Assembly: GCA_050084985.1 (NCBI GenBank)
Contig: JBITNC010000001.1
Span: 76,322,001-76,386,000, forward strand
Length of the DNA stretch: 64,000 nucleotides
Source: Nageia nagi
Taxonomy: Eukaryota; Plantae; Pinophyta
Direction: 5' to 3'
Position numbers and translations under genes: made by a program. Below the pieces are notes generated by a model that did not search any database, was not told the origin of the DNA, and saw only the letters and a program-made list of their open reading frames with translations. Below are positions 1 through 36,302 of this stretch, piece after piece (positions within the stretch are counted from its first letter, which is position 1; the number at the start of each line of letters is the position of its first letter).

Positions 1-769
1 GGATGTTTACTTTTGTGAATACTATATGAAATCTGCTTATACACATTTTGATGTTAGAGTATATGTTAATGTGAGAAAATAATTGATGATTCAAAATAAC
101 CTTTTTCATGAATGCTTAGATGTTTTTGATGATAATAATAGCTTTCTTCAAAATCATTTATTGTTTGGAGACCTTCATTGGATGAAAGATTGCAAAGCAT
201 TTGTGGACACCATTTTGTTATTGAAGAGGAATTTCTAGGATGAGTTTTATGTTGAATATAATTATTTATTGGTTGTACATTGCATGTTTAATAACAATTT
301 CTTATTGGAAAAGGCTATTTTGCAAGTTGACTATGTGATTATTAAAAGCTTGCCTATATTTTATTTACTACTTTGTTGTAATGCTAAAAATCTAAAATGC
401 TTATCATTACCTTACTGTCAACTTAACAAACCCTAAAAATTCTTACATATATGTTTTTTTTTTTAAATAAAACACTTGAATGATCTAGGAATGAACTTAG
501 GTGATCTAAATGAGTATATCCACATTGTTAGCTACCAACATGGATATGGAAATATTGGTAGAGTCTAGAATAACCAATATTGATTAAAACCTTTCTGGTG
601 TTCACTCCATAATGCTCATCCCATTGAGGAGACACCTTGTAGGTGACCCAACCATTCCTATCCTAAGAAATATGTAATATACATTCCATTCATGATGTTA
701 TGGTTTCTTGCATGGGGCCCATATCACCTAAGAGAACACTCTTCCACAAGATTATACATCCTCACCTTA

Positions 770-3700: not shown

Positions 3701-6700
3701 CTACCTACAAAGTTGAGCATGGATTTTAGTATTTGAAGTGGACAAAATTTGTGGGAGCATTTTGAAAAAGATTTATTCCTCATATCTATTTTGATAAGAA
3801 ATATAAATAATATTATACACTTCAGCAAGGCTCCATAAGTATGCAAAGCTATCATCAACAATTCATTAGACTTCTTAAGTACATCCTAAATGATAAAAAT
3901 CACCCAAAGGTTCATAGATTCCTAGTGGATTTGGATTCCAAAATCAATACTGTGGTCAACATCTGAAACCCTAAGAAATTGGAATAAGCTTATGATATGG
4001 CCAATAGAGTAGAAACTAACTTGGGCATTACAAAAACCTTTGTAAGCTATTTTCCAAATAAAAAAGATAAGGAACCTTTCCAAAAGAATATAGGTGCTGA
4101 ACAATAGGCTCTATACAATGATAATAGAAAGGCCAATCAGAATCATAAAGATGGAAACTTTCCTAGATTTGATAAGAAATAACTTGCGAACAAATGTTTC
4201 AAGAAGAATAATTTCTAAAAGAAGAATCAACATTTCAAAATGTAGAATCAAAACTATGGGAATGAAAATCAAGGATTTAAGAACTAGAATTAAGGATTCC
4301 CTAAGCAATAAAATAATCAATATGTGCCTAAGGATAATAATGTAGAGCAAAAGAAACCTCTACATGATGGATGTTGGAACTATGGTGGAGCACATTATGT
4401 GAGTCAATGCCATCTAAACATAGACCCAACTAAGGATCATCAAATTTTTGTAATGATTGGATCAAGATAAACTTGAGGATAAGCTACACCTCTCTAGATC
4501 TCAAGTAAAAGTTTTAGCTAAACTTTTAAAGTTTTGATAGATTGTGGTGCAATGGAATGTTTCATTTCAAATTCGTTTGTTAAAGATATGTTAAAGGCAT
4601 GAAAATTTTTGACAAATAGATGGCACATAGTATTTGGGTATGGTCAAAAGTGTTATGTTAAACAATGCTTTAGGAATGTTGAGATTGAGTTAACTAAAGG
4701 GTTTATATTATAGTATTTTTATGTGGTTCCCTTATCCTCCTATGATATTATCCAAAGAATGGATTGGTTAATGGCACATAAAGCCTTGATCAATTTTTAG
4801 GAAAAATGGGTGGAATACATTGATTTATCCCAAAACTGATATAAGGTGTTAAGTGATCAAGGACCATTTGAACCATACATGATCATAGCTATGCAAATGA
4901 GAAGAAGTATTAGAAGGATGGAAATGATCTATGCAATTAAGGTCAAAGAAGTAGAACCAGAGGGTAAATATGTAGAAATGTTAAACAAGTATTCTATGTT
5001 GAAGAAATATAAGGATGTATTTCCCAAGGAACTACCAGGTTTTTCCCCAAAATGAGAATTTGAATTCTTGATATATCTAGTGCTAGGAGCTAAACCTATC
5101 TCTATAACCCCTTATAGAATGAACACCATTGATATGCAGGAGTTAAAAGTGCAATTACAATATCTTTTGGAGAAAGGGTTGATAAAGCTTAGTGTATCAC
5201 ACCAGGGAGCTTCTATATTATTTATCAAAACAAGGATGAAACATTGAGATTGTGTATTGACTACAAGATATTGAACAAAGTCACCATCAAGAATAGGTAT
5301 CCTCTACCTAGGATTGATGACTTATTTGACCAACTCAAAGATACTACTATATTTTCCAAGATAGATATGAGATTGGTATATGATTAGTTAAGGATAAAAG
5401 AAGTAGATACCCATAATACATCCTTCAAAACTAGATATGAACATTATGAGTTTTTGGTCTTACCATTTAGGCTAATGAATGCTCCTACAGCATTCAGAAA
5501 TATGATGAATAATGTTTACCAAGAATACTTAGACAAATTTATGTTAGTCTTTCTAGATGATATTCTTATATACTCAAGGGATGAAGAGGAGCATAACCAT
5601 CATTTGAGAGTAGCCTTAGAGGTTTTGATATGACATCAACTATATGGTAAATTTTCTAAGTGTGATTTCTATGTTTCTCACATTCAATACTTAGGTCACA
5701 TTATTTTTGCCAAAGGAATCTTAGTTGACCCTAAAAAGGTAGAAGTAATAATGAGTTGGCCTTCACCAAAAAATGTGACTAAGGTAATAAGTTTCATGGA
5801 ATTAGTTGGGTATTATAGAATATTTGTTAAGTATTTCTCAAAGATAGAAAATCCTATCACTAGTCTGCAAAGAAAAATAAAGTGTTTAAGTGGACTAAGA
5901 GGTGCAAAAAGGCTTTCACAACTTTGAAAGAAAAGCTTACCTTCGCACCAATTCTCACTATCCCTGACCCACACAGTGACTTTGTAGTGTGTACAAATGT
6001 GTCATTAGAGTTTTAAAGTGGAGTACTATTGTAAAATAGAAATCTCATAGCATATGAATCCAGAAAGTTGAAGCCACATGAGTTGAATTATGCTACACAA
6101 GATCTTGAGTTGGAAGTTGTAGTGCACGCACTCAAAATGTGGAGGCATTACTTGCTAGGAAAATCTTTCAAATTGGAAATATATCATCGAAGTTTGAAAT
6201 ACTTGTTCACTCAGCTCAACTTAAATGCTAGGTAATGGTGATGGATGGAATTCCTCATAAAATATGATTTTGGTATTGAGTATATCAAGCGTAAGGAAAG
6301 CAAGGTGGTAGATGCATTAAGTTGAAGAAGATATGTAAATGCCATGAAAAGAAGCCATTATGACCTATTTGATCAAGTGAAAATCTTTCAACAAGAAGAC
6401 CTATACTATAAATCCATCAAGGAAATGATAAAGAAAGGTAATCCTTCATCTCATGAATTTATTGAAAAAGATGGAATTTTGTATTTTAGAGACTGATTAC
6501 TCATCCTAAGAAAAGGAGATTTAAGAAATTTAATCTACAAGAAGCCCATCATCCTCCATATGTAGCACATCCAAGAGGAATGAAGATGAGAGAATACTTG
6601 AAATAAAAATTCTATTACAATGGAATGAAGAAGGATATAATTGATTTTGTGGCAAGATCCTTGGAATATCAGAAAGTGAAATTGAAACATCATATAGGTG

Positions 6701-9700
6701 GATATTTGTAACCCCATGATATTCTGACACATAAGTGGTAAGTAATTTTGATGGATTTTATAGTTGGTTTGCCAAAAATTAGATTCCATCATGACTTAAT
6801 ATTGGTTGTGGTTGATAAGTTAAGCAAGGTTGAAAACTTTATACCTGGTAACACTAGAGATGATGCCCCTGTAATAGACAATAAGTTTACACATGAAATA
6901 TTTAGATTAGATGGACTTCTTTAAGTGATATTCTCAAATAGGGATTCTAAGTTCATTTCTATATCTTGGAAATCATTAAATAAGGCATTGGGTACAAAAT
7001 TGAATATGAGTTCAACTTATCATCCTAAAATAGATAGGAAGATAGAACATGTTGATAGGTTCCTCAAGTACATGCTCAAAATCTATTGCATGGAATAAAA
7101 TGCCAAATGAGAAGATTATCTCTATTTGCTTGAGTTCACATATAATAATGGCTATCATTCATTATTAGGAATGGCTCCTTTTGAAGCACTATATGGAAGG
7201 AGGTGTAGAACTTCTTTAACTTGGGAAAATCAAGAGGATCAAATGATGATCCAATCATAAATATTAAAGCAAATGGAGAAGTAGCTAAAGTCCATTTGAT
7301 GAAAGTTGAAGAAGGCTACTGATTGACAAAAGATTTATGTCTATCTTAAGAGAAATCCTTGAGAATTTTCTATTGATGATAAGGTCTTTTTATGAGTTTG
7401 ACCCATGAAAAGTTCCATAAAGTCAAATGAATTAGATCCCCAATTTGTTGGTCCTCTTGAAATTAATGAAAAGAAGAGTCCAATAGCCTACAAACTTACC
7501 TTCCACCAATTTTGTCCAAAATACATGATGTATTTCATGTCTCTTTGTTACAAAAGTATGTTATTGGCCCTCCCATATTTTGGATTTCTCTAATTTATAG
7601 ATGTTATACCCTCATGTAATTGAAGTAATCCCTATCAATATCTTAGCTTTTAGGACTAGGAAGCTAATAAATAGGGAAATTAATGAATGTCTAGTCCAAT
7701 GGGACAAATATTTTGACTCATATTCTAGATGGGAAGATACAATCACTATGAAGAGATAATTTCTATATTTGTTTGTTTAAGTAAGTATGTGAAATATTTA
7801 TAAGTTTGTTTTTGTATGTAAGAACGCAGGGGACTATGTTCTTTTTAAGGGGGGTTGTATGTCATGACCCACCTCAAGACACTATTTGACCTCAAGTACT
7901 ATCGATGATTTGGATGGATCATGTTTGGAATAATGCTATGGTGATGATAAATTTGATAAAGAAATATGTAATATTTGACTTAATTTGATGTTGGCTTTGA
8001 GGTTTTTCATGATTCAAATAACAAGTTACCTCGAGATGGAGAAAATGATCGATAGACCCTAAAGACCAAAGATAAATTGGTGATGGGAACAGAATTGTAA
8101 GAAGGAGGAAATGATTAGTGTTGAATCATTGATACGTCCTATGACCATCATAGATCATGTAGTTGCATGTAGAATGATTGTTATGATTGATAATGTTTGG
8201 TGGAAATGTGTTTGCAAATATGTGTGGAATAATAATCTTGCCTTATAAGATGAGATGACCATCGTAGATAAAGGTGTATTTCACTTGTTGTGTTTTGAGT
8301 TTTGAATTTAAAAATAGAGGTAAAAAGGAATATACCTTATTTAAATTTGAATATTTACATAAGGTTAGAAAAATAAATTTATATGGGATAAAAGTTAAAA
8401 ATGAGTGCCCATGCTATTATCACATGAGGCTAATAGTGAAAATACTATTAAAATAGATTTAGTATTAAAGGATATTTTGGACTCATTTGCAAATTATTAA
8501 GCAATTATTGGTAGGAAGCACATGTCTTTCATCTTATTATATGAGGTGTTAAATAATAATGGTCTTCATAGTACCTTAATAGTACTTAATAGTAACCTAC
8601 CTTGATTTAGGAGTACTACCTCCAAAAAGGACATGACCCCACTAATATTAATTTTAGTCCTTTAGATTCCACTTTAGATTTAAATATTATTTTTTTATTA
8701 AAGTGGGAATAGTAAATATTTTGGCTAATTCCTACACCTTAAGGTTATAAATACAAGGGCCTAACCTTAAGCAACAACCAAGTAATCATGAATATCAAGC
8801 TTAGAAGCTCATGGAAAAGAAAAGCCTTTCCCATATTTTATTTTATCAGGTGCTCTTATTTGCCAAAATCTAGTAGAAGAGAAATGGATGTTTAATTGAT
8901 TCATGTATTTATCTTATGTATTGCCTTTTGGATAAAGTTTAATTCCTTATTACAGATGTAAATTATTTTTAAATTTCAACTTGAGAATCTATTATTTGGA
9001 ATAATATTTTAATATTACTTGTTCTATTTTTATTTTGAAAAGTGAGCCATCATGTGCTCCTCAAAATTTTAAATTCCTTTGTATTTTTCCCTCATAGAAT
9101 AGATGACTTTTTTTTTACTATGTCACATTTTATCACCTCCTTGAACTTGAGAAAGCCAGAGGATAGCAATGTGATATTGGTTCACTATGCCTTCCATAAT
9201 AATTTGTGTAACATAATGATTCTTAGGCTTCTCACCTTGGAAATAAGGTGTAGTCCTCTTTCCATGTCATGTAGACTCGAAAGTCTCACCTACAATAGCA
9301 TAGGATTTAAAATTGTAGAATTTCATTTACAGAGTTTTCCTCAAACCATGAATGAAAGAAAATAATGTTGAATCTGGTAAGAATTTTGTATGGCCATTTA
9401 TTATGTGTCTTCATTACATCTATTTAGGAACCTCATGTACTCATTGAGAAGATTTCAAACACTATTAATATGAATAACTTGATCTAGGAATACTCATCTC
9501 TATGTTCTTACAATAAAAAAAAAGAATCTCTTGATAGTGTACTTCCCTAATATTGGTGCCTATCAGAATTATTGAAAGGTAAAGCTAAAACAAAATAAGC
9601 ATAGTATATATACGAAACACCTATCAAGTTAAACTCTCTATCATTTGTAACCAAGGTACTTTCAAGCATGATTAGAATCCCTTTGGATTCTTACTTTGGT

Positions 9701-12236
9701 CTATTAGAGAGTTCATAGAGATTGGTTCCAAATTTGATCCTTGGGGTTAAATCACCCATAGTTAAGAATTATTTCCCTTTTTATAAAATGAACACAAGCA
9801 AATCATAGATCCTTGCCTTTGAGCTCATCCTACAAAAATAATTTGGGAACTCTATCCAAATGGTCCAAGTATTTTATTAATCCACCCTATACTCTTTCAA
9901 AGTCAAGACTAGTGTACATAGTGATAAACTATGTGCACCTTTCCATTGAGAGAATGCCATTTGATAGATTCATTCCATGATTAGTCATTGATTAGAGATT
10001 AAATTTTCATTAAGTAATAAGGTTATTGAGTAATTAAGTGTAGTTAATTTTTGTATATAGTGATTGCATTTTTATCATTATTTGTTTGAAATAGATTTAT
10101 GGAATGAATTCCAATTAATTAAGAATACCATAATTACTAATACAAAAAGATATAGTAATGGGCTATAAAAGTAAAGAGGGGGATTTAAATGTAATAACTT
10201 GACATTGATAATAATGAAAAACAAAAGTTATGAAATTTTGTATTTATACTTGAAGTATAAGATGATCTATGACCAAGGAAGAGAGCTAGTCTGAAAAGGA
10301 CCTAAAATACTCTCAAGGTATCTAGTGAATGAGTGCATTGCATGTATCATGGTCAATTAAAAAAAGGCATGTCTTGATCTTCCTCCCTTGTAGTACTCAA
10401 TCCATTCACCAAAGTTCCATGGAGTTGTTCATTTCTCATAGATCGATGGAGGTATTCCACGATGAGACAAAGATGACTTACTAATCCATTGATATGAGAT
10501 GATATGATTATATTTGTATTACAAGTTAAGATGTATTATGATCCTTTGTAATTGTTTGTAATTAAATGAAAGTAAATTTCATTAATATAGATGTATTATG
10601 GATGGATTTTACTAAGTGTATTTGATCTTCTTATAATTAATTAATTAATGAAGATTGTTTTGTATTAATACCTTATTCGTATATTGAAATGGTAAATGAA
10701 AAGTAAATGATTTTATGTGAATTGGTTTTTATTAAATAAATGCTAGCATTATGATTTAATGATTTTCCTTTATGAAAGATATTATGATTGTTAAATGCTA
10801 TGATGAATAGGAATTAAGAATTGTTGTTACATGAAAATGATTAGTGGGTATTACAAATTGATGAAGTAAATGATTTTACCAAAACTACTAAAGAAGTAGA
10901 TTGATTAGGTCATTAATCCTAATAAATTCAAAACTATCCCAAATACTTAGAAATAATCCTAAATTAGAGTTAGGGTTCCAAATGATAATTTGGGATCACT
11001 CAAGAAATTTTAGGGATCATTGGGTACAAATGGGATCCATTGGGAATAAATAGGACCATTTGGGAGTCCTTGGGATAACTAGGGAGTTCTTAAATAATAA
11101 GGTAATAATCATAGTTTAAGGAATAAAACCCAACTTAAGTTTAGATTCTATCGTATTTCGACCAAGGACCATGGAAAATCTTGAAAAGAATAATTCGACC
11201 CAAAGGAACTTTTGGGATGGATGTAATAACGAAAGCAATAATGCAAGGAAAATGATGAAGAACCTTAAAAAAATAAACCTATACTACTAAATGAAAAGTA
11301 AAAGGAATATTCCATATGTGAGGACCACATTGTGCTGCATTACCTTTGTAGCAATATTAGGAAAGGACCTTATCTCAAGACTTGCTACTTTATGTATGCA
11401 TGAGGACTTTTAAAAAGTAGACTCCTATACATAATACAATACATATGGAATAAATAGAACCCTGTGACTTCCTATGCAAGCCTATAGCCAAGAATTTCGA
11501 TGTACGCCTCTTGAAAAAAGATGAATAGTGCTAAATCCTAGGTTGGAACTTGGTGTACATTATGATCAATTATTATGCATGGTGTCTTATACCATCATCC
11601 TATTTGGGATCATTATTACAAAAAGGTTATTAAGTCATGGGTGGTTTCTTTTATCAACACATTTATTAATAAATTATATTAAACAACCAATCAAGGGTAT
11701 TATTTAATACCCATGGCTCCCCAAGTTATGGTCATGGGGATGTCAAACCACATGGTTGGCCTAGTTGATATTTATGGGCAAATTAGTGACTCATATCCTT
11801 CAAAAGGTGTGTCATGTGGGGATAGAAATAAAAGAAACATATTTACCAAATGAGGATAACTAGTAGTCATACCACTCACAGTTAGTAGATAGGGGTATGA
11901 TGATCTCTCAGGTGGTATGAGACCAAAGAAGAAAATTAATATACCATGATGAGAAATCCTGTTGCAAACTAGAAGTGAAATAGGAATGGTGGGATCAACT
12001 TTGAGGCATCTTCTCAATAGGGTGAGTGTTGAGGAGTAAAAAATAGAAAATTTTATCAAGGTTGGTTATCCTGATTCTTGACTAATCTTGCCATGTGAGT
12101 GCTAAACTAGCTAGAACCATTATTAAACTCATGTGGGATCACTGGGTCCATTCCTAGATTATTTGAATGTTATATTAAAAAATATTTGGTTTAAAATTTA
12201 GGGTTTCAATTGATGGGAATAGCTGGATATGTTACA
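770..12236 (+). mobile_element. Element B: Ty3/Gypsy chromovirus (decayed, formerly autonomous) nested in A's LTR
   Basis: LTRs at 770-3014 and 7860-12236 (TGTCATGACC...GTTACA). Degenerate PBS tagagatcaaagc at 3015-3027 and PPT at 7843-7859. Degenerate TSD cctta/cttga; the uninterrupted site in the other A LTR reads cccaa. TATAAATA at 1647 and 8746. Confidence 0.93.
3480..7770 (+). pseudogene. gag-pol of B (gag, zinc knuckle, protease, RT, RNase H, integrase, chromodomain), with many stops and frameshifts
   Basis: GCWNYGGAHYVSQCH ~4369, VLIDCGA ~4531, [13 protein letters not shown] ~5297, FLDDILIYS 5550, HALKMWRHYLLG ~6125, MDFIVGLPK ~6751, PQFVGPLEI ~7438 and ECLVQWDKY..SRWED ~7685-7738. 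Confidence 0.93.
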
Positions 12237-14009
12237 CTTGATGTATGACCCTTTGATTCATATGCATAGATAGATTGTTCCAGGAAATCCTCCATATGAA
12301 TGGATAGCATCATCACCTATGAAATGGTCATCATACTCCTATATGCTAAATTGTACGCCATATGACTACTTATTTACCCTCACCTGATAACCATAGTTTT
12401 ATCAACTGCTACCCTCATCTAGCACCCTATCAAGGATATGAGACACTAGCCTACCTATATCTATCAGCTAGGCCCACCATGGAGTCTAGCATCCCCATAC
12501 CCATATCTTGGGGAGCCATGGGTATTAGATTAACAATACCATAACTAGTTGTTTAAGTGTAATAAATTTTGTTAGTAATCATGTTTATCAAATGCAAAAT
12601 CAATAACTCATCAATCATATGTAGGAAGTTATACCAAAAAGCTCAATTATGAAATCAAAAAGGTAAATTCAACCATAATTGCGCAACATAAAGCAAGATC
12701 ATTACTTCACAAGCAAGTAACAAGGTATTTTGGCATAGAATGTATCTCCAAAACTTCATTGTTTATGGAATACATCTTATAACTAATCTAATACTTTACC
12801 TTTAAAGTAAGGTATTTCATTGGTTCACCCATCAAGGGATTACATTATATTTAGTATGATCCTAACCATGGATTGTGATCATTTTCAAGAGTACATAATA
12901 TTTTCCATGAGTCATTGATTCTCCATACATAGTATATCAAACTAGGGTTTTCCTTTATGGTACAATTTGTAATAATCTTCTTTTTCAAGAACATATTCAA
13001 CTTTAAAGGTGTTATGTGGCTCCATCCTTATCTTTAACAAGCCTCAATCCATCTACTATCATCCTTGAGCATGCCTCCATCCATAGAAACCAAGGTGATA
13101 TGATTTTGAGTACTAGTATTAGATTAGAGTTTGGGAGGATTGGGATAACTCTTGGATTTATGAAAATGCATCCTACCCTAGATGCAAACACATCATATAC
13201 TTTAAATACACAATACTCTCTCTTGATCTCAATAGAATTTATGTATTTCCAAAGGCTACCTATCTTCCTCGACCATGGAGTCTATTAATACATCATCCAT
13301 TCAAAATTTCATCTCAAACAAATACTCCATTTCAAATCTCTATAGATTCTAGGTCTCATTGAGAGATTACCCATCTTCCTCGATCATGGAGTCGATTGAA
13401 AATATTATACATTATCATTCATTCTCATAAAGCAAGATCATATCCTTTTAATATCATTTTAATAACAACCAGTGTCCTCATGATCTTGAAAGGATTTTTA
13501 AACTACCTCTTTTAAAAGTAAAATCACAGAAAATTATTATTTACTTCCACAAACCACATATCGTATCATGATCAAAAGATCAATCATGACATGAATGTAC
13601 TTCTATTAGCATTAATTAAAGCTTTAAAAAAAGTCTCATCCATATCATTATAATAATATACTTTTCTCTTCTAAATCAATGAGAAGTTAGCACTTCTAGT
13701 TTGATATCCAACTTGCTAATTTCTTCAACCCCAAGTACTATACTTAGTAACTTAGTCATATCACTTATTAGTCAAATTCTTGTGCTAGCATTACACCCTT
13801 GAGGTCTAATGTTTTCACATCCTCGTTTGATATCATAATGGTATAGCGAGGAAAGATAAAGAGGACTTGTTTATCATCTTTTTGTGAGTGATTTTGATTT
13901 ATACTATTGTATGCAAGTAAGAGAATTATAATTACCAATATACCATTGATCAAGAAATTTATTTATTTTTCTTTATTAACACGTATATTTCCATGACATG
14001 TAAGGTCGG

Positions 14010-15830
14010 TCAAAATGAAATGATCTTAGGATATAGAATAAACAAATATAATGAAAGGGCCTATGATTTGTTTGATAAAATATTTCATCTAATAATAACC
14101 AAAAAGCTGAAGGAAGTGTTGATAGAATCTTTAGTATTGTTTGGCATAAGGTTTCATAGAATGCCCAAAATAGATAAGAGGAGAAAAGTTTAGTATTGTA
14201 CAGCAAAATGTTTCAACGTATGCCAAGAAAAGTATGTTGAAAAGAGCTTAAATTGTTTAACAAAATACTTCAACGAATGCCACTCAAAACAAACATATTG
14301 AAAGGATCCTCAAATTGTTTGATAAAAATATATAGAACTTCCAAAGTGGACACGTTAAAAGGGGATCCGCGAATAGTTTGACAGAGTGATTCATCCATTA
14401 GAGTCTCTATTACTATATGAAGGATGCCAACAGGGATGTCAAAAGGGTTTGTACGAATTTGGCAAGGAGCCTCACTGAGTTGCAGTTTCATGAAATGTAA
14501 TGACCTTGAAGTGACTACAAGCGGGTAAACTAAAAAGGATGCTTGATTTATTTGACAAAGTTCCTCAACAAATGCGAATTCAAGAGCACAGTAGTGGATG
14601 TGATCTGCGTTAAAAAAGAAATGCATATTTAATTGAAAAGCCGCCCACATTGAAATAATGTTTGATTGAAGGTAAATGACGCAACGAGTACTCAAACAAA
14701 TATGCAAAAAGGGTTCTTAAAGTATTTGAACAATCATTTCATCGAGCGCAGTCTAAAATGATCACATGAAGTGAAAGTATTGAAGGGATATGAAAATTTC
14801 TTTATGGAATTCCTCATTAAATCTAGTCTCACTTACTACAATGAGCGAACAAAAACTAGACAAACTATAGGGCCTCTGAATTGTTTGATAAAATGCTTAA
14901 TAGGATATAGTCTAATACGATGCAATGATGGGATAATATGCTATTATCAAGCATAGAGCCAAACTCTGCAATGTCTGAAAACGTTCTTACAATATGTAAA
15001 CCATACAAGGTCTCGTTTGCCAGACTACGATCGCAGCAAGATTTGTATAAAATGGGTTCTGATAAAGGTTATAGAAATATAAAGCAGATGCAATCATCAA
15101 GTGTAAAGCCAAAATCTGCAACCTCCATGAGCATTCTTCCAAAACAGCCACCATGCTCATAATGGGTTTTCTGAGAGAAGCGACATTTAAGTAGATGCAA
15201 TTGTCAAATGTAAAGCCAAGTTCTGCAATCTTTGTGAGCATTCTTCCAAAATGACTATCGAGCGAAATGAATACACAAAGTCTGGGTCTTGTGGGCTGCA
15301 ACCATGGTAGGATATGTACAATTTGATGCATCAATAGGGCCTATGGATTATTAAATAGAAACCTTCGATAGATAACCCCAAGGACGCAGTGACTTGCTAC
15401 CTAAAATATCTATGCAATGACCACTGATTTAAAAATAAATGAGCATATTAAAGAGCTCAAAAATTGTCTGGCACATCAAGAATAGCCACCGATTTGTTTA
15501 ACATACTACTCTATCGAATTGCATTGCTTGCACGATCAAAAAGGTAAAACAAAGGGGATTTAAGACCTTTCCGAGAAAAAGCTTCACAGAATATCAATAT
15601 TAGACAATCGAAGTGATCATATGATGCAAATCGTAACAAGGATGTTAAGGAGGCCTGAGAATAGGCGACATGGATCCTCTTATGCTATCCCAAATGGGCG
15701 TAAATAAGTTTGTTAAGAAATCCATGGGAACACAACACATCTTGGAACTGTGGACTTCATGGATGTCACTAATCACGACTATGTAGGTATAGTTGTGAAC
15801 GAAGATATGCTAAGATTTGACAAGCACTTA
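14010..15830 (+). pseudogene. PPR (PLS-class-like) motif-fragment array in the 3' LTR of A, non-coding
   Basis: Translated fragments include NEMILGY..ERAYDLFDKIFHL, LKLFDK, LDLFDKVPQQ, SELFDKMLNR, KQMQSSSVKPKSATSMSILP and MQLSNVKPSSAIFVSILP. These match PPR consensus pieces WNAMIAGYAQNG..EKALELFDKMPQR and KQMQLAGVKPNSTTFASILP. Frameshifts and stops occur throughout. Confidence 0.88.
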
Positions 15831-17156
15831 TTTCAAGTTAAAATTTGTTTAAAATCACGATTAAACTCAAGGAGACTTCCATACCATCAGTAAAAAATAA
15901 GGTGGTACTAAACCCAATGTGATTTATCTATTATTCCTGTTTCCAAGTACTATTTCTGCAAAAGTTAGTTCACGTGCACTCGCATGGCCATAAATTTTCT
16001 GTATTTAAATTTTTTCTTTATCTTTAGTACATATGTAGACAAGATGTATCCATTTTCACATGCAAAAGTATGAAATAAATACAAAGGTTACATCTTATAA
16101 TACAAATAAAATAGAACCTTTGAAAACTAATAATCTTATTAATAATTCTCACAAACTTTGTTTTTAAGAAGTCTTTCCATCAAAAATTACTAAACAAATT
16201 CAAAACCAAAACTAAACACTTAGTACTAGAGTCTTGAGATTAGCATTGGACATAAATGGAGAAGAGTTATTTCCTCTATGTCCCTCTAGGCCAATGTTTT
16301 TGAGAGAAGAGTAGTGTTTTTATAAGGTTCACTCATCTAGTATTTATAGGCATATTTTGATATAGTCCCTCCAAAAGTAGGACTATTTGGCCAACTAATT
16401 TTAATTTTTTTGGTAGATGTAGGTCCTTTACTTTTTGTTTTGTGGGGGATGTCAATTAATTATGTTTGTAGGTGGACTATCCTCTAAAAACAAACTTTAG
16501 TCATCTCATACTATGTTACAAATTTTTTCTAATAATTTCTTACATCGAACACATGAAGACAAATTGTATGGGTGCCTTCTTTCAATTATTGGTACAAATT
16601 CCAAGTCCACTTACAATTAGCAAAATAAGACAATTAATCTTTTCAATTTCTAATTTTATTTTCATCTTAGTTTATTAAATTATTTTGATGAAAAATTCAA
16701 ATTTAAACCATTGGAACATTCCTTCCCTCCTTAACCAATTTTTACAATACATATACTTTTAAAAATCATTTTTACTTGGAATGACCTTTCATCCTATAAG
16801 GTAATTCATGAGTGCATACATGCATGCATCATCGAAATTGAAACTAATGCATGATGATGATATGCATCTACATGATTCCTTATGGCTATCAGCAATTCAA
16901 TGCTAATCATTTCTTCACTCTTACCAATTTGTTCCCTGCAACCAACTTATCTTTGGTTCTTCAAGGTCTCCATCTTGACATTCCCATTAGTCGACCTATT
17001 ACCTATGTCATAATAACCTTGAAGCTAGCATCAAATTGATACAAATAGTGCATAAATCATTCATATTCCATTTCACTTGATATATTTGTTTGCAATTTAG
17101 TTCAAATCCCCCAAGGTCATTAGGTCTCCTCAAGGATGTTTGGGTGGGTCATTGCA

Positions 17157-17175
17157 TACTACCCCCTTTAAAAAG
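17157..17175 (-). promoter_or_regulatory. Polypurine tract of A
   Basis: Minus strand TTTTTAAAGGGGGTAGTA immediately before the TG of the 3' LTR; nearly identical to B's PPT. Confidence 0.85.
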
Positions 17176-19770
17176 AATACAATCCCTTATGTTCTTAATC
17201 TACATCAATAATAAAGTGTAATAATGTTTACATAACCATTCATATAGATAATAAATTTATCTTCTCATAAAATATAGCTTCTCAAAATGGAAAGAGATTC
17301 ACACAAATTCATCTTATTATGCTAAACATGCGTATATATTTTAGCTACTCATCTTTTTAGTCCTAAAACTAAGATTTGATGAAGAGATTTCAACATCTAG
17401 GTGATCCAATACTTGTAAGATTAAAGAAATCAAAGCACACAATTGATCAAACATTTCTTTTTTGAAGAAGATACATAGAGACATCTTATCCCTTTTGATA
17501 ATTTGGGTGATAGTTCAAGCATGTAAACCATTTGACTCCCTTTTTAGTTATACTCAAAGGACCAATTAGGATTTTGTTTTCTTTGGAACTTATGGCATAG
17601 CTATAGTAAATTCTTGAAGAGAAATCCTTGCTCCTCTAATTGCTCATAAATTTTGGATGGATCATGACTAGATCCTCCATATCATCAGTAGGAGTTCTCC
17701 ATCTCCTTATATTAAAGCATGGAATCAATTTTTTTCAAGAAGATAAATATGACTCAGTACTAGGAAACATTTTTCTAATTAGTCAAATATTCTCTGAATG
17801 CTTGAAGCTTTGTGGTATAAACATAATTCATAGCTTCCACAAAGTCATCATTGGTAGGTTTTTAGCATACTAATTCGATTAACATAACCACCACCAAGTA
17901 AATGTACAAATCCATCAAGCAATTTTTGAATGGAAATTTCATAGAGAATATTAAATTTCACTTCACTTTGTAAACATGCTTTGTACTAGATTTCATCATT
18001 CCCATTTAATCTACGAGGAATTCAATGTCCTAATACCTCCTTTCATCCTTAGATGGCAATTAATTCCTCTTCTTTCATAAGACCTATTCTTATGAATCAA
18101 ATTTTATCCTTTGTAGGGAATTTTCCTTAGTAATTCAAGACACCTTCAAAGTGAAATATTTTCAAATGAGTACAATTATATTAACTTTTTGAAGAAGTTT
18201 AGCCTATTTTCACACTTATTTACTCACCTTTTGTCAAAGATTTTAATGATCTCAACTTGTTTCGTCCAATGATGCTAAAATTAATAAAAAAATTCAAAAA
18301 TCTAGAAAGGTTTTATGCACAAATACCCAGATTTGAAGTGGTAGTGGTGGTATTCTTTGGTTGTTCCTTTTTAAAGGGATATTGATTCTAAAAATGCTTT
18401 CCACCACATGCCTAACAACCTTTGGTGTTTTTATTTCCAAACATTATTTTTTTTAAGATTGATTTGTTCTTTGTCCATGCTTTTGATTACTACATTTTTT
18501 GTATACTTCATCAAGAAGTAGGTTTAATAGTTCTTGTTATTCTACCATTCAAAATTGCATATCCTTCAGTTACTTTTGAATCAATATGAAATTTTCAAGG
18601 ATTTGGAATGCATTTACATCATCATTCTCTTGAGATATATTTTTCTTGATGACATCATCTTGAACTTTCTAACTTGAATTATCCATTAGTTTGGATTCCA
18701 TTACTTGACATAGTAACAAAGTTGAGTCACTATGCTAAAAGGTCTAATTCCTTATTGCTTATAAACTACAGTAATTTTAATTTAGCCAAAAGAGACTTTC
18801 ACATATTCTACTTAATACATTATTGAATTAATCACGTCTTTTCAAATGATGGGATTTTAAAATCTTTTGTTGACCTTGAGCATATTCTTACAGTAATATT
18901 CATTCACATCACCATAAAAAGTAATGATATTGTACTTTTATTCTTTTTATTGTACACCTAACTTGGATCACTTTTAAAAGTTTTTGCAACATTCCTTTTT
19001 CTTTTATCATTTTTGACTAAATTGATGTAGACCTATGAGGTTTTCATTCAACTATGTTTTTAATATCCTTTTTACTTTTGACCTAGTATTATCTTATTTT
19101 TGCATTTCAACTATCATTGTAGTTTATTTCACAAGGTTCCTAATCTTAGGGTAAGGCACCTCCTAATGAACATTTCTTTAGCTTAATATCAAATATTTGA
19201 TGGTACTTTATTGAATCATCAACTCCCATTTGGATGATTCTCCCTAATTTTCATATTTTATTACCACTTCCAAGGCTAATTTCCACTAATAGTCATGTTC
19301 TTATCTATTTCTCAAGTAATACTATCAAGAAGTGTTAACTTAGTCTTATCTAGGTACCTTTTTCAAGTCCATAGGGGTATATACTTTTCTTACTTTCGAT
19401 GGGGTAACTAAAATTTCATTCATTCAATCCTTCTCCTAGTACACTATGGAATATGTATCCCTTTTACACCTTAAGGGTACCTTCCAAGTTCTTAATATCT
19501 ATTCCTAATAGGTCATCCTACCTAGATAATACCCATTTCCTTGGGTGTAATTGAGATAGTTTTCTATTTTAGATGAAAGAGATTAGGTTAACCCTAATCA
19601 TTAACATTACTAACATGTCATCTCTTTCTATAATGAGGCAAGTTTTCAAATGCTCTAATGAATCATGGGGGGAATGCCATAAGTTAATTCCATAAAAATA
19701 AGTTTAATTAAATTGAGTAACTTTTTCAGTAAAAGGTCATGGATCGTAGGCTCAAGATTTTGAACTTGAA
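17176..19770 (-). pseudogene. Deleted gag/pol remnant of A (gag zinc knuckle, RNase H end/integrase pieces, GPY/F-chromo region; PR and RT not seen)
   Basis: Minus strand GC*ACGGKHF zinc-knuckle remnant at ~18385-18420 and a GPLSITKKG..VYMLELSP GPY/F-type remnant at ~17500-17565. Only 2.6 kb separates the PBS and PPT. Confidence 0.65.
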
Positions 19771-19782
19771 GCTTTGATACCA
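19771..19782 (-). promoter_or_regulatory. Primer-binding site (tRNA-iMet type) of A
   Basis: Reverse complement TGGTATCAAAGC, 1 nt from the LTR end; the canonical site is TGGTATCAGAGC. Confidence 0.9.
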
Positions 19783-21803
19783 ATGTTGTGAGCTACTAGC
19801 ACCCATATGCCAAGATTGGTAGAGTCTAAAATAACCAATCCTAATTAAAAACTTTTTGATGTTCACTCCACGATGCTCATCCCATTAAGAAGATACCTTG
19901 TAGGTGACCCCACCATTCCTACCCCATAAATTGTGTAACAGATATTCTAGTCATGATGTTATGGTTTCCTACATGTGTCCCATATAACTAACGAAACTCT
20001 CTTCCACAAGATTATACATCCTCACCCAATGTATGACCCTTTGATTCATAGGTGTAGATAGATTATCTTAGGAAATTCTCCATATGAATGGGTAGCATCA
20101 TCATTTATGAAACAATCATCATACTCCTATATGGTAAACTATAAGCAGTATGACTACTAAATTACCCTCACCTGGTAACCATTGTTTTATCAATTGCTAC
20201 CTCATCTAATACCCTATTAAGGATATGGGACACTAGCTTTTCCATATCTATCAGCTACGCCCACCATGGAGTTTGGCATCCTCGTACCCATATCTTGGGA
20301 AGCCATGGGTATTAGATTAACAATACCCTAACTAGTTGTTTAAGTGTAATAAATTTTGTTAGTAATCATGTTTATCAAATGGAAAATCAATAACTCATTA
20401 ATCATATGTAGGAAGTTTTTCCAAGAAGCTCAATTATGAAACTGAAAAGGTAAATTCAACCATAATTGCACAACATAAAGCAAGATCATTACTTCACAAG
20501 CAGGTAACAAGGCATTTTGGCATAGAATGTATCTCAAAAACTTCATTATTTATGGAATACATCTTATAACTAATCTAATACTTTACCTTTAAAGTAAGGT
20601 ATTTCATTGGTTCACCCATCAAGGGATTACATTACATTTAGTATGATCCTAACCATGGATTGTTATCATTTTCAAAAGTACATAATATTTTCCATGAGTC
20701 ATTGATTCTCCATACATAGTATATCAAACTAGGGTTTTCATTTATGGTACAATTTGTAATAATCTTATTTTTCAAGAGCATATTCAACTTTAAAGATGTT
20801 ATATGGCTCCATCCTTATCTTTAACAAGCCTTAATCCATCTACTATCATCCTTGAGCATGCCTCCATCCATAGAAACCAAGGTGATATGATTTTGAGTAC
20901 TAGTATTAGATTAGAGTTTGGAAGGATTGGGATAACTCTTGGATTTATGAAAATGCATCCTACCCTAGATGCAAACACATCATATACTTTAAATACACAA
21001 TACTCTCTCTTGATCTCAATAGAATTTATGTATTTCCAAAGGCTACCTATCTTCCTCGATCATGTAGTCTATTAATGCATCATCCATTCAAAATTTCATC
21101 TCAAACAAATACTACATTTCAAATCTCTATAGATTCTAGGTCACATTAAGAGATTACCCATCATCCTCGATCATGGAGATGATTGAAAATATTATACATT
21201 ATCATTCATTCTCATAAAGCAAGATCATATCCTTTTAATATCATTTTAATAACAACCAATGTCCTCATGATCTTGAAATGATTTTTAAACTACCTCTTTT
21301 AAAAGTAAAATCACACAGAAAATTATTATTAACTTCCACAAACCACATATTGTATCATGATCAAAAGATCAATCATGAAATGAATGTACTTCTATTAGCA
21401 TTAATTAAAGCATTAAAAAAAAGGTCTCATCCATATCATTATAGTAATATACTTTTCTCTTCTAAATTAATGAGAAGTTAGCACTTCTAGTTTGATATCC
21501 AACTTGCTAATTTCTTCAACCCCAACTACTATACTTAGTAACTTGGTCACATCACTTATTACTCAAATTCTTGTGCTAGCATTACACCCTTGAGGATTAA
21601 TATATCACACCCTCATTTGATCTCATAATGGTATAGTGAGTTAAGTTATAGAGGACTTGTTTATCATCTTTTCGTGAGTGAGTTTGATTTATACTATTGT
21701 ATGCAATTAAGAGAATTATAATTACCAATGTACCATTGATCAAGAAATTTATTTATTTTTCTTGATCAGCACATATATTTTCATGACATGTAAGATCAAT
21801 CAA

Positions 21804-23680
21804 AATGCAATGATATTAGGATATAGAATAAAAGAATATAATGAAAGAGCATGTGATTTGCTTGACAAAATATTTCATCTAATGACAACCAAAAGGCTAA
21901 AGGAAATGTTTATAGAACCTTTAGTATTGTTTGACATAATGTTTCATCGAATGCCCGAAGATAAGAAAAGTTTATTATTGTTTGGCAAAATGTTTCAACG
22001 TATGCCAAGATAAGTATGTTGAAAAGAGCTTAAATTGTTTAACAAAATACTTCAACGAATGCCACTCAAAACAAACATATTGAAAGGATCCTCAAATTGT
22101 TTGATAAAAATATATAGAACTTCCAAAGTGGACACGTTAAAAGGGGATCCGCGAATAGTTTGACAGAGTGACTCATCCATTACAGTCTCTATTACTATAT
22201 GGAGGATGCCAACGGGGATGTAAAAAGGGTTTGTAAGAATTTGGCAAGGAGCCTCACTGAGTTGCAGTTTCATGAAATGTAATGAATGACCTTGAAGTGA
22301 CTACAAGCGGGTAAACTAAAAAGGGTCCTTGATTTGTTTAACAAAGTTCCTTGACAAATGTGAATTCAAGAGCGCAGTAGTGGACGCAATCTGTGTTAAA
22401 AACGAAATTCAGATTTAATTAAAAAGCCACCCACATTGAAATAAGATTTGATGGAAGGTAAATGGCGCAACAAGTACTCAAATGAATATGCAAAAAGGGT
22501 TCTTGAAGTGTTTGAACAACCGCTTCATCGACCTTCAATATACTGCTCACGGAGAAGAGCGAAATCGTTAGAAGAACTCAAGATTTATTTGATAAAACTT
22601 TTCATTGAGGGCAGTATAAATGATCCCATGAAGTTAAATTATGGAAAGGATATGTAAATTGCTTGATGGAATTCCTCATTAAATCTAGTCTCTCTTACTA
22701 CAATGAGTGAACAGAAAACAGACACGCTAAAGGGCTGCTGAATTGTTTGACAAAATGCTTATTAGGATATAGTCTCGTTTGATGCAATGATAGCAAAATA
22801 TGTTATTGTCAAGCGTAAAGCCAAACTATGCAATCTCTGCAAACATTCTTCCAATATGGCAACCATACAAGGTCCAGTTTCCTAAACTACGATCACAGCG
22901 GGATTTGCACAAAATGGGTTTTCTGAAAAAGGCTATAGAAATATAAAGCAAATGCAATCATCAAGTATAAATCCGAACTCTACAACCTCTGTGAGCATTC
23001 TTCCAAAATAGACACCATGCTCAAAATGGGTTTTCTAAGAGAAGTATATTTAAGCAGATGTAGTTGTCAAATGTAAAGCCAATCTCTGCGAGCATTCCTC
23101 CAGAATGACTATCGAGCGAAATGAATATACAAAGGCCGGGTCTTGTGGGCTACAACCATAGTAGGATATGTACAATTTGATGCATCAATAGGGCCTATGG
23201 ATTATTAAATAGAAAACTTTGATAGATACCCCAAGGGAGCAGTGACTTGCTACCTAAAATATATATGCATTGACCACAAATTTAAAAATAAATGAGCATA
23301 TTAAAGAGCTCACGAATTGTCTGGCACATAAAGAACAGCCAATGATTTGTTTAACATACTCTCCATCAAATTGGATTGCTTGCAAGATAAAAAAATGTAT
23401 TTTAAGGGGATTTAAGACCTATTCGAGGAAAACCTTCACAAAATATCAATATTAGACAATCAAAGTGATCGTATGATGCAAACCGTAACGAGGGTGTTAA
23501 GGAGGCCTGAGAATAGGCGACATAGATCATCTTGATGCTATCCCAGATGGGCATAAATACATTTATTTAGAAATGTCATAGGAACACAACACATCGTGGA
23601 ATTCCAGACTTCATGGATGTCACTAATCACTACTATGTAGGTATAGTTGTGAAGGAAGATGTGCTAAGATTTGACAAGCA
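21804..23680 (+). pseudogene. PPR motif-fragment array in the 5' LTR of A (second copy)
   Basis: Fragments NAMILGY..ERACDLLDKIFHL, LLLFGKMFQRMPR, KRVLEVFEQ, gaattgtttgacaaaatgc (ELFDKM) and KQMQSSSINPNSTTSVSILP. Colinear with 14010-15830 plus one extra unit. Confidence 0.88.
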
Positions 23681-24191
23681 CTTATTTCAAGTTAAAATTT
23701 ATTTAAAATCACGATTAAACTCTAGGAGACTTCCCTACCATCATTAAAAGATAAGGTGGTGCTAAACCGAATGTAATTTATCTATTCCTATTTCGAAATA
23801 CTAAGTCCGCAAAAGTTAGTTAACATGCACTCACATGGTCACAAATTTTCTTTATTTTAAATTTTATCTTTATCTTTATTACATACGTGGATAAGATGTA
23901 CCAACTTTTACATGTAAGAGTACGAAATAATACAATGGTTACATTTCTCATGATTCAAAAAAATATAACCTTTGAAAACTAATAATCTTATTAATAACTC
24001 TTACAAATTTTATTTTAAACAATCCTTTCCATAAAAAATTAGCAAACAAATTCAAAATCAAAACTAAACACTTTAGTATTCAAGTCTTGAGAATATCACT
24101 AGGACTTAAAAGGGGAAGAGTTCTTTCCTCCACATCCCTCTAGGAAAAATTTTGAGAGAAGAGAAGTGTTTTTCTAAGGTCACTCACCTAG

Positions 24192-24199
24192 TATTTATA
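24192..24199 (-). promoter_or_regulatory. Putative TATA box of A 5' LTR (equivalent at 16341-16348 in the 3' LTR)
   Basis: Minus strand gccTATAAATActagg followed by a pyrimidine-rich tract (cttctcttctctc), a typical LTR promoter layout. Conserved in both LTRs. Confidence 0.7.
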
Positions 24200-25041
24200 G
24201 GCATATTTTGATATAGTCCCTTCAAAAGTGGGACTATTTGGCCAACTCATTTTAATTTGTTTGGTAGGTGTATGTCTTTTACTTTTTGTTTTGTAGGGGA
24301 TGTTAATTAATTATATTTGTGGGTGGTCTATCCTTCAAAATAACTTAATAGTGTTATCTTCAAATAACTTAGTCACCTCATACTATGTTACAAAATGTTT
24401 TTAATAATTTCTTGCACCTAACACATGAAGACAAATTGTATGGGTGTCTTCTTTCAATTATAGGTGCAAAATTTCAAGTCCACTTGCAATTAAAAAAATA
24501 AGATAATTAATCTTTTCAAATCCTAATTTTATTTGCCCTTTAGTTTATTAAATTATCTTGGTGAAAAATTCGAATTTAAACCATTGGAACATTCCTTCCC
24601 TCCTTAAGTAATTTTTAAAATGCATATATTTTTAAAATTCATTTTTACCTCAAATGACCTTTCATCCTGCAAGGTAATTTGTTAGTGCATACGTGCATAC
24701 ATAATTGAAATCGAAACTAATGTATGATGATGATATGTATCTACATGATCTATAAGATTCCTTGTGGCTATCAACAATTCAATGCCAATCATTTCTTCAC
24801 TCCTACCAATCCATTCTCCACAACCAACTCATCTTTGGTTCCTTAAGATCTCCATTTTCACATCCATGTCAGTTGACCTATTACCAGTGTCATAATAACC
24901 TCAAAGCCAACATCAAATTGATACAATAGTGCATAAAATTATTCATATTCCATTTCACTTCATAAATTAGTTTGTAATTTAGTTCAATTCCCCCAAGGTC
25001 GTCAGGTATTCAAGGGCATTTAGGTAGGTCATCACATTTGT

Positions 25042-35100: not shown

Positions 35101-36302
35101 TTCTTCATTTCCCTCCCTATTCCATGTAACTTGGAGCTATATTAATGACCATAAATGGTTGCAAAAAATTACATGGCTACCAAAAGAACATAGAGACATG
35201 TTGTACCAATCAAGCTAATGGACCATGCCTTCATAATCATCTATAGTCATAATAAGATGTAATCAATGATAGAGCAAAGTGATTGCGATTGGGAGGTATA
35301 GCAGTTAAGAGATATTAAACTCCTATACCTTAGCATTGATTGTACTTAATCATTGTATAGTAATTATGATTATAATTTGTACAATTGTAAATAGTTCCTT
35401 ATACTACAATAGTTCCTTATACAGTTCTTAGTCAATAGAGTAATTAAGAATAATAATAGTGGACAACCACCCAATGGTAGATGTAAATATATAAATAATG
35501 GACTATTATAAGTCCAAAAGATCAAACATTCTAGCAAATTTTCTCAGTGTATGAGATGCTTTATGTATGATAATACAATACAATGATGCTTTTCCGTTCA
35601 TAGTTTGTGGTTCTTCATTATGTTTTGGTAAATGTTATGCATGAAGTATTTTCTTAAGTTATGGTTGTGTATTATGATTGTGAGACCCCAAGAGTAAGAT
35701 AGTTTGCTATTCATAATAATATTGGTTATGGATTACTTCTTGTGTGGTAATTCCCAGGCTTGTTAATTTTAGTTTACTTTTTTTATCTTGTTCATTTTTC
35801 TCTTTCCTATTACTCTCATATGTTATCTCTTTCTAGCCACTTTTAACCTTACTATAGATAGGAACCAGCCTATAATCTGAAGATTGAGCATAAAATCCTA
35901 AGTACACTCTCCCACCACCTTGTGCTCTTTCAAGAATCCTTCTATTGTGGGCAATGGAGTACATGACTAGACCAAACCCTTAAGGTTACATGATATTGAT
36001 CAATAGTAAAAAAAGTCCATTTTTAGCATGCTCGATGGGATGCAAACTAAATTCAAAATTTAGTGTGAATGAAGAGGCCAGATAACTATGTTTGGTAATC
36101 TATCATTTAGTGCTTTTAAATATTATAAGGTTTTTCTTTCCTTATTGGCAACTCTGCTATCAACCAGTCAATATTTTGAACCATGGCACCATCAAAATAT
36201 AGACTTACTAGAAGTAGTGCTAGAAATTCCTTAAGATAGCCCAGATTTCAAGAGCTATCAATTCCTAATAGGAGGATTAGGTGAAATATTTCCCATATAT
36301 TA

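Follow-up and report, generated by a model that had tools for sequence, protein, structure and literature searches.

A probable fossil LARD-like retrotransposon of Nageia nagi with a decaying antisense PPR pseudogene in both LTRs

The window analysed here, a 64,000-nucleotide stretch of Nageia nagi DNA, contains an LTR retrotransposon, element A, both LTRs of which carry a non-coding cassette that resembles PPR genes. We think it probable that A is a fossil LARD-like element with a captured, decaying antisense PPR pseudogene. The cassette most likely has no selected function.

Under this account, A would stem from a Ty3/gypsy chromovirus lineage, of which a decayed autonomous relative, element B, is nested in the 3' LTR of A. 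Ahead of its last transposition, the A LTR presumably lengthened from some 2.2 kb to some 5.3 kb, and in doing so would have taken in, in antisense, about 1.9 kb of a PLS-type PPR gene of the host. The PPR piece would already have been broken, and partly amplified into units of about 60 nt, before that transposition. Reverse transcription would then have put the cassette-bearing LTR at both ends of the new insertion, a doubling that follows from the way LTR elements replicate. In its later decay, the cassette probably lost CpGs through methylation-type changes, acquired indels and, in patches, underwent gene conversion between the LTRs. Once silenced, A would yield at most ordinary heterochromatic siRNAs, some perhaps matching close PPR relatives.

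The host retrotransposon and its nested relative

Element A lies on the minus strand and is about 13.2 kb long once the nested element B is excluded. The parts of both elements are as follows.

377-25036, minus strand: element A, one LTR retrotransposon with LTRs of ~5.3 kb, target site duplication (TSD), PBS and PPT
372-376: left TSD copy of A, TTTGT on the plus strand, read as ACAAA (minus) after the 3' LTR end ...GCATTACA
25037-25041: right TSD copy of A, TTTGT, read as ACAAA (minus) ahead of the 5' LTR start TGTGATGACC
377-769, minus strand: distal, U5-end part of the A 3' LTR, separated from the remainder by element B
12242-17156, minus strand: main part of the A 3' LTR, aligning with 20029-25036; minus-strand start TGCAATGACCC, directly 3' of the PPT
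19784-25036, minus strand: A 5' LTR, 5.25 kb, without ~148 bp of the U5 end (the counterpart of 377-524)
19782->19771, minus strand: A PBS, TGGTATCAAAGC, matching 11/12 positions of the plant initiator tRNA-Met PBS, one base past the LTR end
17157-17177, minus strand: A PPT, TTCTTTTTAAAGGGGGTAGTA, immediately ahead of the TG that opens the LTR
17157-19770, minus strand: A internal region, 2.6 kb, non-coding
770-12236, plus strand: element B, the decayed remains of a Ty3/gypsy chromovirus, nested within the A 3' LTR

The LTRs of A form a repeat pair (12241-17152 against 20029-25032, with identity of 92.6% and then 85.2%) that reaches left to 377-769 after excision of element B. Within this distal part, 525-766 aligns with 19786-20026, and 377-524 with the ends of the B LTRs. 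Both LTRs (5.25 and 5.3 kb) have TG...CA termini, with minus-strand starts TGTGATGACC and TGCAATGACC and ends ...ACA and ...TTACA. The 5-bp TSD is intact at both flanks, AAAGGGGGTAGTA precedes the 3' LTR as PPT, and the PBS match is the sole one within the window. The interior has no ORF longer than 77 aa and no Pfam match. Tandem segmental duplication, as an alternative to an LTR element, is ruled out by the PBS, the PPT, the TSD and the homology to B.

Element B has LTRs at 770-3014 and 7860-12236, the latter holding a 2.2 kb insertion (8833-11067), and an imperfect target duplication (CTTA / CTTGA). Its PPT, AAGGGGGG, lies directly ahead of TGTCATGACCC, and Pfam finds the domains RVT_1 (E 1.5e-12), RT_RNaseH (E 1e-16) and Chromo (E 0.0085). 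The two elements resemble each other at the ends of their LTRs (A 98-509 with B 108-531; A 4632-5236 with B 1525-2118) and of their interiors (A 8-66, 430-573 and 2221-2625 with B 6-65, 2512-2663 and 4434-4841), at an identity of 62-77%. In the interior of A, this resemblance covers only the 5' leader, a stretch of about 150 bp and the final ~400 bp. The PBS and PPT of A are both homologous to those of B. Since A and B have LTR ends and interior ends in common, A is apparently a LARD-like, non-autonomous derivative.

The PPR-derived cassette

The cassette, about 1.9 kb long, occupies matching locations in the two A LTRs and is antisense to the element.

13990-15890, PPR sense plus: PPR-derived cassette, copy 1, within the A 3' LTR, with many stops and frameshifts
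21780-23745, PPR sense plus: PPR-derived cassette, copy 2, within the A 5' LTR
14044-14380, plus strand: five tandem units of ~57-69 nt each, anchored at 14068, 14137, 14196, 14253 and 14315

An earlier, sequence-only reading of this DNA had described the same PPR array in both LTRs of A, and we confirm it within the slightly wider limits given above; judged by CpG density, the cassette would extend up to about 15981 and 23923. The opposed orientations that it proposed, PPR sense plus and element minus, also hold, as both priming sites read on the minus strand, the PBS from 19782 to 19771 and the PPT across 17157-17177. Each of the five units retains solely an 'xLFxKMxxRMPxK' stretch. Self-alignment with a shift of about 60 (14130-14265 against 14189-14327) gives 71% identity. 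Similarity among the units is just 70-85%; TRF reports no arrays in the cassette apart from a 26-nt, 2.2-copy repeat at 14422-14447. A 77-nt indel at 22531-22607 gives copy 2 one LFDK unit more than copy 1, and is a microhomology deletion of one unit from copy 1.

We agree with the earlier reading that the array is non-coding. Its longest stop-free stretch is 100 aa, and several stops and frame changes are common to both copies. Because identical stops and the ~60-nt unit array are present in both, the cassette would already have been non-coding at insertion. ORFs of 145 aa and 115 aa on the minus strand of the cassette were rejected as genes: they have no Pfam match and are truncated or missing in copy 2.

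A PPR origin of the cassette, though heavily eroded, is well supported. Motifs of the LFD.MP.R type number 4 in the plus frames of one cassette and 6 in those of the other, with 0 in minus frames; dinucleotide shuffles of the cassettes (n=1000) gave a mean of 0.06-0.07 and a maximum of 2. Across the window, the 10 occurrences in the cassettes are all on the plus strand, compared with 8 on both strands in the other 60 kb. VKPNSAT-type motifs were found solely in the cassette in a scan of the window. With phmmer, a 77-aa piece (14929-15159) matches two PPR proteins (E 4e-13 and 1.8e-10), both of which carry PPR_2 at ~1e-89. When the repeats of these two proteins were made into a small HMM, it matched each cassette at the orthologous site alone, with weak scores of 5.5 and 3.1 bits. 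The source looks like a PLS-type PPR gene of the RNA-editing-factor type with E/DYW remnants, the PLS-E-DYW assignment being a motif order read by eye.

The array might instead be a transposon-internal repeat with PPR-like motifs by chance, a reading that could draw on the many blank searches. Among 20 stop-free cassette pieces, 19 have neither a PPR nor a DYW match in Pfam; two pieces run against the sequences in PDB matched nothing, a word-based homologue search with a 100-aa piece returned no candidate, and the protein Atlas gave no usable match. We nevertheless find chance mimicry scarcely credible. The plus-strand enrichment exceeds all 1000 shuffles, phmmer matches PPR proteins only, and the best of the Pfam pieces (22886-23008) has PPR_2 as its sole match (E 0.012, under the family threshold). 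Further, a sharp CpG-rich boundary separates the cassette from the transposon DNA.

The region in which an E/DYW deaminase (HxE, CxxCH, DYW) was looked for, at 15564-15890 and 23416-23744, has no match in Pfam or PDB. By eye, it contains remnants in the expected order with the catalytic motifs gone, which we note as a lead only.

Decay of the cassette and readings of its function

The cassette has a CpG-rich composition that is foreign to the transposon. Its two copies contain 37 and 36 CpGs (o/e 0.63 and 0.60), compared with 5-9 in the LTR flanks (o/e 0.15-0.32, with 0.18-0.19 for the flanks of copy 1) and an o/e of 0.17 for the window as a whole; in round terms, the cassette stands at 0.6 against 0.12-0.19. 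Of 54 cassette CpG positions, 14 are retained in both copies and 27 are CG in one and TG or CA in the other. High CpG content together with fast CpG loss suggests younger, gene-derived DNA rather than a protected island. Divergence between the LTRs (K2P) is 0.13 in the cassette outside low-divergence tracts and 0.15-0.18 in the flanks. The tracts, and one further site used below, are these.

12497-13792: low-divergence tract 1 between the LTRs, K2P 0.037 against 0.13-0.18 elsewhere, outside the cassette
14193-14492: low-divergence tract 2 between the LTRs, K2P 0.038, within the cassette unit array
16342-16348 (partner 24193-24199), minus strand: TATA-like site, TATAWAW

These tracts make gene conversion between the A LTRs likely. 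Tract 2 spans three LFxKM units; outside it, 23 of 180 sites in the LFDKM cores differ between the copies (12.8%), and the VKPNS cores differ by 18%. The cores, which the sequence-only reading had proposed as conserved segments, are thus no better kept between the LTRs than the rest. Non-CpG divergence is ~0.105 in the cassette, somewhat under the 0.14-0.17 of the flanks (z ~2.3). Together with tract 2, this may reflect weak constraint on the cassette, as seen in a comparison of two copies. The CpG loss, the unit loss and the unprotected cores look neutral, as though the cassette decays like its LTR surroundings.

The same divergence bears on when the cassette arrived. It might have entered one LTR after insertion and been copied to the other by gene conversion, so that it was never mobilised. 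Conversion between the LTRs is likely, and the non-CpG divergence of the cassette is slightly under that of the flanks, both of which would fit. However, divergence over most of the cassette is close to that of the flanks (0.13 versus 0.15), and conversion of a 1.9 kb heterology is rare. A search for a poly-A tail, TSD, TIR or CACTA ends flanking the cassette and recurring in both copies found none, so the footprint of a separate entry is missing. We regard late entry as exceedingly improbable. The matching location in both LTRs and the intact TSD of A instead bear out the earlier proposal that the cargo was within the LTR at the last retrotransposition.

The sequence-only reading went further, suggesting that an LTR promoter produces an antisense-PPR non-coding RNA from which TAS-like 21/22-nt secondary siRNAs act against numerous PLS-PPR mRNAs, so that the element would be a mobile regulator of the whole family. 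Indeed, the cassette runs antisense in both LTRs, and would be present in that orientation in any full-length RNA of the element. In element sense, a TATA-like site common to both LTRs precedes the cassette by 0.3-0.45 kb, and TAS1/TAS2 and TAS-like loci are known to target PPR families (PMC5902766). The predicted TATA is present in both LTR copies, but its role as promoter is not supported: the LTRs have three minus-strand TATAWAW sites in common, all conserved to an equal degree, and the two others, with starts at 14334/22116 and 13903/21693, would put the cassette in U3. The marks of a TAS-like regulator are also missing: no miR390 target site was found with up to 3 mismatches allowed (miR390 being the sole miRNA trigger searched), no inverted repeat or hairpin in the cassette, and no Rfam match over the window. 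At 70-85% similarity between units, a single siRNA would seldom suit many targets. The element is old (K2P 0.13-0.18), bears a nested insertion and has a 5' LTR without its U5 end. Neutral decay like that of the flanking LTR had been named beforehand as speaking against a regulator, and decay of that appearance is what we see, in deamination-type CpG loss and microhomology unit deletion. To our knowledge, PPR-targeting tasiRNA systems concern P-class PPRs in eudicots, not the PLS class. A TAS-like small-RNA role finds no support in the sequence, and we judge it very improbable.

A humbler effect is possible, if on balance doubtful: 24-nt heterochromatic siRNAs from a silenced A might match the PPR gene from which the cassette came, or that gene's nearest relatives, causing methylation cross-talk with no selected role. 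The strong CpG depletion of the window and the fast CpG loss of the cassette fit long-term methylation, and the mechanism is documented for captured maize gene pieces (bioRxiv 10.1101/777037). Against it, ~13% divergence between the LTRs, added to divergence before capture, means that few 24-mers may still match any gene. It is very unlikely that PPR cargo is kept in transposons because anti-PPR small RNAs modulate the RNA-editing PPR family, or because the cost of silencing cross-talk shields the transposons, with this LTR family as one mobile carrier.

Comparison with known systems

LARD-type non-autonomous LTR retrotransposons were reportedly described by Kalendar et al. in 2004. LARDs are defined as non-coding LTR elements of more than 4 kb (PMC13570524). 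Like them, A combines long LTRs of ~5.3 kb with a short interior of 2.6 kb that does not code for protein, and it retains a PBS, a PPT and a TSD. It has LTR and interior ends in common with an autonomous-type gypsy relative that could have mobilised it in trans. Unlike them, its LTR contains a recognisable host-gene wreck. Triticeae LARDs are defined by genome-wide copy number and conservation; A is likened to LARDs by its structure.

The Bs1 element of maize is an example of gene-fragment capture by an LTR retrotransposon. A survey of rice and sorghum found gene pieces captured by LTR retrotransposons, PPR domains included (PMC3726574), and pieces captured by maize Sireviruses can cause siRNA cross-talk with their donor genes (bioRxiv 10.1101/777037). 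In A, too, a host gene piece lies within the element's borders and was apparently moved by retrotransposition; host-gene sequence carried in this way would be gene capture (transduplication). The cargo of A differs from those captures in lying inside the LTR itself, and thus being present twice, in its antisense orientation and in its partial amplification into ~60-nt units. Capture inside an LTR means that the cargo is doubled at each insertion.

Loci of the TAS1/TAS2 type relate to P-type PPRs, and the cassette apparently to the PLS/DYW type. The cassette resembles TAS1/TAS2 and TAS-like loci (PMC5902766) in being non-coding and complementary to PPR genes. Unlike TAS loci, it shows no miR390 site within 3 mismatches and sits inside an old, methylated-looking transposon. 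A CpG-rich patch in CpG-stripped transposon DNA can be younger, undecayed gene sequence, and not a functional or protected island. If PPR cargo in transposons proved to be conserved, or to be a source of gene-targeting siRNAs, it would link gene capture to the control of organellar RNA editing. The sober reading, if true, is that two known things have been joined in A: a LARD-like gypsy derivative and the capture of a host gene.

Anatomy of element A and its nested relative

Self-comparison of the window recovers a direct repeat pair (12241-17152 versus 20029-25032), in which identity is 92.6% for the initial 2.5 kb and 85.2% for the remainder. The segment 525-766 additionally matches 19786-20026, so the left repeat copy is interrupted by 11.5 kb of foreign DNA. 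The junctions can be read as those of a complete minus-strand LTR retrotransposon, element A, whose anatomy is fully resolved. Its target duplication is intact, showing that a single insertion gave both LTRs.

Features of element A and of element B, a retrotransposon nested within it (window coordinates)
372-376 and 25037-25041: target duplication TTTGT of A, perfect, 5 bp
25036 to 19784, minus: 5′ LTR of A
19782 to 19771, minus: primer-binding site of A, TGGTATCAAAGC, one base past the 5′ LTR; sole match in the window
2.6 kb between the primer-binding site and the polypurine tract: interior of A
Reverse complement of 17157-17177: polypurine tract of A
17156 to 12242 plus 769 to 377, minus: 3′ LTR of A, in two pieces
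770-12236, plus: element B, splitting the 3′ LTR of A
770-3014 and 7860-12236, plus: LTRs of B
8833-11067: unclassified 2.2 kb insertion inside the second (3′) LTR of B

The primer-binding site agrees at 11 of 12 positions with the consensus for plant initiator tRNA-Met. About 148 bp are missing from the end of U5 in the 5′ LTR of A but kept in its 3′ LTR and in both B LTRs (377-524 versus 19784); this deletion stops exactly at the primer-binding site and shows ACA microhomology.

Element B is a decayed Ty3/gypsy chromovirus whose interior still shows a reverse transcriptase remnant (RVT_1) at E 1.5e-12, an RNase H remnant at E 1e-16 and, weakly, a chromodomain at E 0.0085. The LTRs of A and B align only at both ends (A 98-509 versus B 108-531, 62%; A 4632-5236 versus B 1525-2118, 70%), and those of A, at 5.3 kb, are more than double the 2.25 kb of B. 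The primer-binding and polypurine regions are homologous between the two, and similarity of their interiors is limited to three parts: the leader, a piece of about 150 bp and the final 400 bp. By these alignments A and B are relatives. The interior of A holds no ORF longer than 77 aa and no Pfam match, which, together with this kinship, makes A a non-autonomous, LARD-like derivative, the term being used, as in PMC13570524, for LTR elements over 4 kb without coding capacity. The related LTR ends of B and A, lying head to head, also give rise to a 119-nt inverted repeat (11702-11820 / 12412-12530, 77% complementary).

Elsewhere, LTR-type repeats of 76-85% identity (33292-35399, 46519-47801 and 52466-53242) belong to another old, rearranged retrotransposon cluster. 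Two ORFs are found between these repeats, one encoding an integrase zinc finger (48679-49155, minus) and the other gag-like (36303-36812, plus). The whole window has 31% GC, a CpG observed/expected ratio (o/e) of 0.17, an excess of TG/CA and no ORF above 169 aa. It is DNA of a large plant genome that is filled with transposons and looks heavily methylated.

An eroded PPR gene in both LTRs

Both LTRs of A contain the same plus-strand stretch, here called the cassette (copy 1, 13990-15890; copy 2, 21780-23745). The sequence-only reading had described it as a PPR-like array in plus sense within a minus-strand element, a description borne out by self-comparison, the primer-binding site, the polypurine tract, the target duplication and motif counts. 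Three-frame translation is crowded with PPR-like pieces, including ...AYDLFDKI, LFGKMFQRMPR, LDLFDKVPQQ, ASELFDKMLNR, IEPNSAM, VKPKSATSMSILPK and ITAGFAQNGFSEKGYRNIKQMQSSSINPNSTTSVSILPK. Matches to an LFD.MP.R-type pattern number 4 in the plus frames of copy 1 and 6 in those of copy 2, with none in the minus frames of either, against a mean of 0.06-0.07 and a maximum of 2 in 1000 dinucleotide shuffles; the other 60 kb of the window hold 8 occurrences, both strands counted. In a search of 1.84 billion proteins, a 77-aa piece (14929-15159) matches just two, at E 4e-13 and 1.8e-10, and each is a PPR-repeat protein. Another piece (22886-23008) matches Pfam PPR_2 below threshold (E 0.012), and the remaining protein searches of cassette pieces (Pfam, PDB sequences, homologue and Atlas searches) found nothing. 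Origin of the cassette from a PPR gene, now badly eroded, is well supported. As a lead only, the stretch from ~14930 to 15870 resembles, by eye and against the published PLS-class motif order, remnants of L-S-E1-E2-DYW in the correct order with the catalytic motifs destroyed.

The initial 350 bp differ in kind, comprising five tandem units of 57-69 nt, 70-85% alike, each retaining only an LFxKMxxRMPxK stretch. Stops, frame changes and this unit array are common to both copies; consequently, the cargo was non-coding before element A last moved.

The cassette is also a sharply bounded CpG-rich patch, its copies holding 37 and 36 CpGs (o/e 0.63 and 0.60), compared with 5-9 in the LTR flanks (0.15-0.32) and an o/e of 0.17 for the whole window. 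At insertion it had ~80 CpGs and an o/e near 1, by a simple two-copy estimate. We infer that gene-derived DNA joined an already CpG-stripped transposon lineage shortly before this insertion, and that its CpGs have since been disappearing through methylation-type deamination. CpG is found in one or both copies at 54 positions; both copies still have it at only 14 of these, and at 27 one copy reads CG and the other TG/CA, so the cassette is no protected island.

Decay of the cassette and the small-RNA proposal

LTR-to-LTR K2P distances in element A
Left end: 0.18
Right flank: 0.15
Cassette without low-divergence tracts: 0.13
Tract 12497-13792 (partner about 20284-21580), outside the cassette: 0.037
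Tract 14193-14492 (partner about 21975-22275): 0.038

Two tracts thus differ by ~3.7% between LTRs, compared with 13-18% elsewhere. Since the larger lies outside the cassette and their distances are equal, the simplest account, and a probable one, is that a single gene-conversion event acted patchily between the LTRs. Such tracts make LTR-based dating unreliable for element A.

The cassette had been proposed as a mobile anti-PPR, TAS-like small-RNA locus, transcribed antisense from the LTR promoter. Its putative functional cores are not spared from change: LFDKM cores outside the tract show 23 differences between LTRs in 180 sites (12.8%), and for VKPNS cores the figure is 18%. Copy 1 is short of a complete LFDK unit, removed by a deletion of 77 nt bounded by TTCATCGA/TTCATTGA repeats (14737 / 22531-22607), and copy 2 retains this extra unit with its four CpGs. 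By K2P distance, unspared cores and unit loss, the cassette decays as the flanking LTR does, a pattern that the sequence-only reading had itself named as counting against the proposal, with the caveat to neutral decay that its non-CpG distance is slightly lower (about 0.105) than that of the flanks (0.14-0.17).

The defining marks of TAS-like loci are the miRNA that triggers them, siRNAs in 21-nt phase and targets in trans (PMC5902766). An Rfam search found no family anywhere in the window, a search for a miR390 target site found none, and the cassette contains no inverted repeats of note; the low likeness of its tandem units (70-85%) also counts against the proposal. The TATA-like site advanced as the promoter (16348/24199, minus) is real and common to both LTRs, but its assignment is not unique, two further sites (14334/22116 and 13903/21693) being likewise common. 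If either of these were the promoter, the cassette would lie in U3. Whichever site serves, full-length A RNA would bear the cargo antisense, a consequence of layout and not evidence of function. The regulator hypothesis finds no support in the sequence.

Capture of the PPR fragment

The cargo is a captured PPR pseudogene, broken beforehand and decaying alongside its host element. The borders of the two copies share no poly-A tail and no target duplication, nor do they share terminal inverted repeats or CACTA ends. The antisense orientation would make it unlikely that reverse transcription simply switched template to a co-packaged mRNA. In maize, siRNA cross-talk has been shown between captured fragments and donor genes (bioRxiv 10.1101/777037). 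Capture of gene fragments by LTR retrotransposons, PPR domains included, is already known (PMC3726574), and element A represents a further example.
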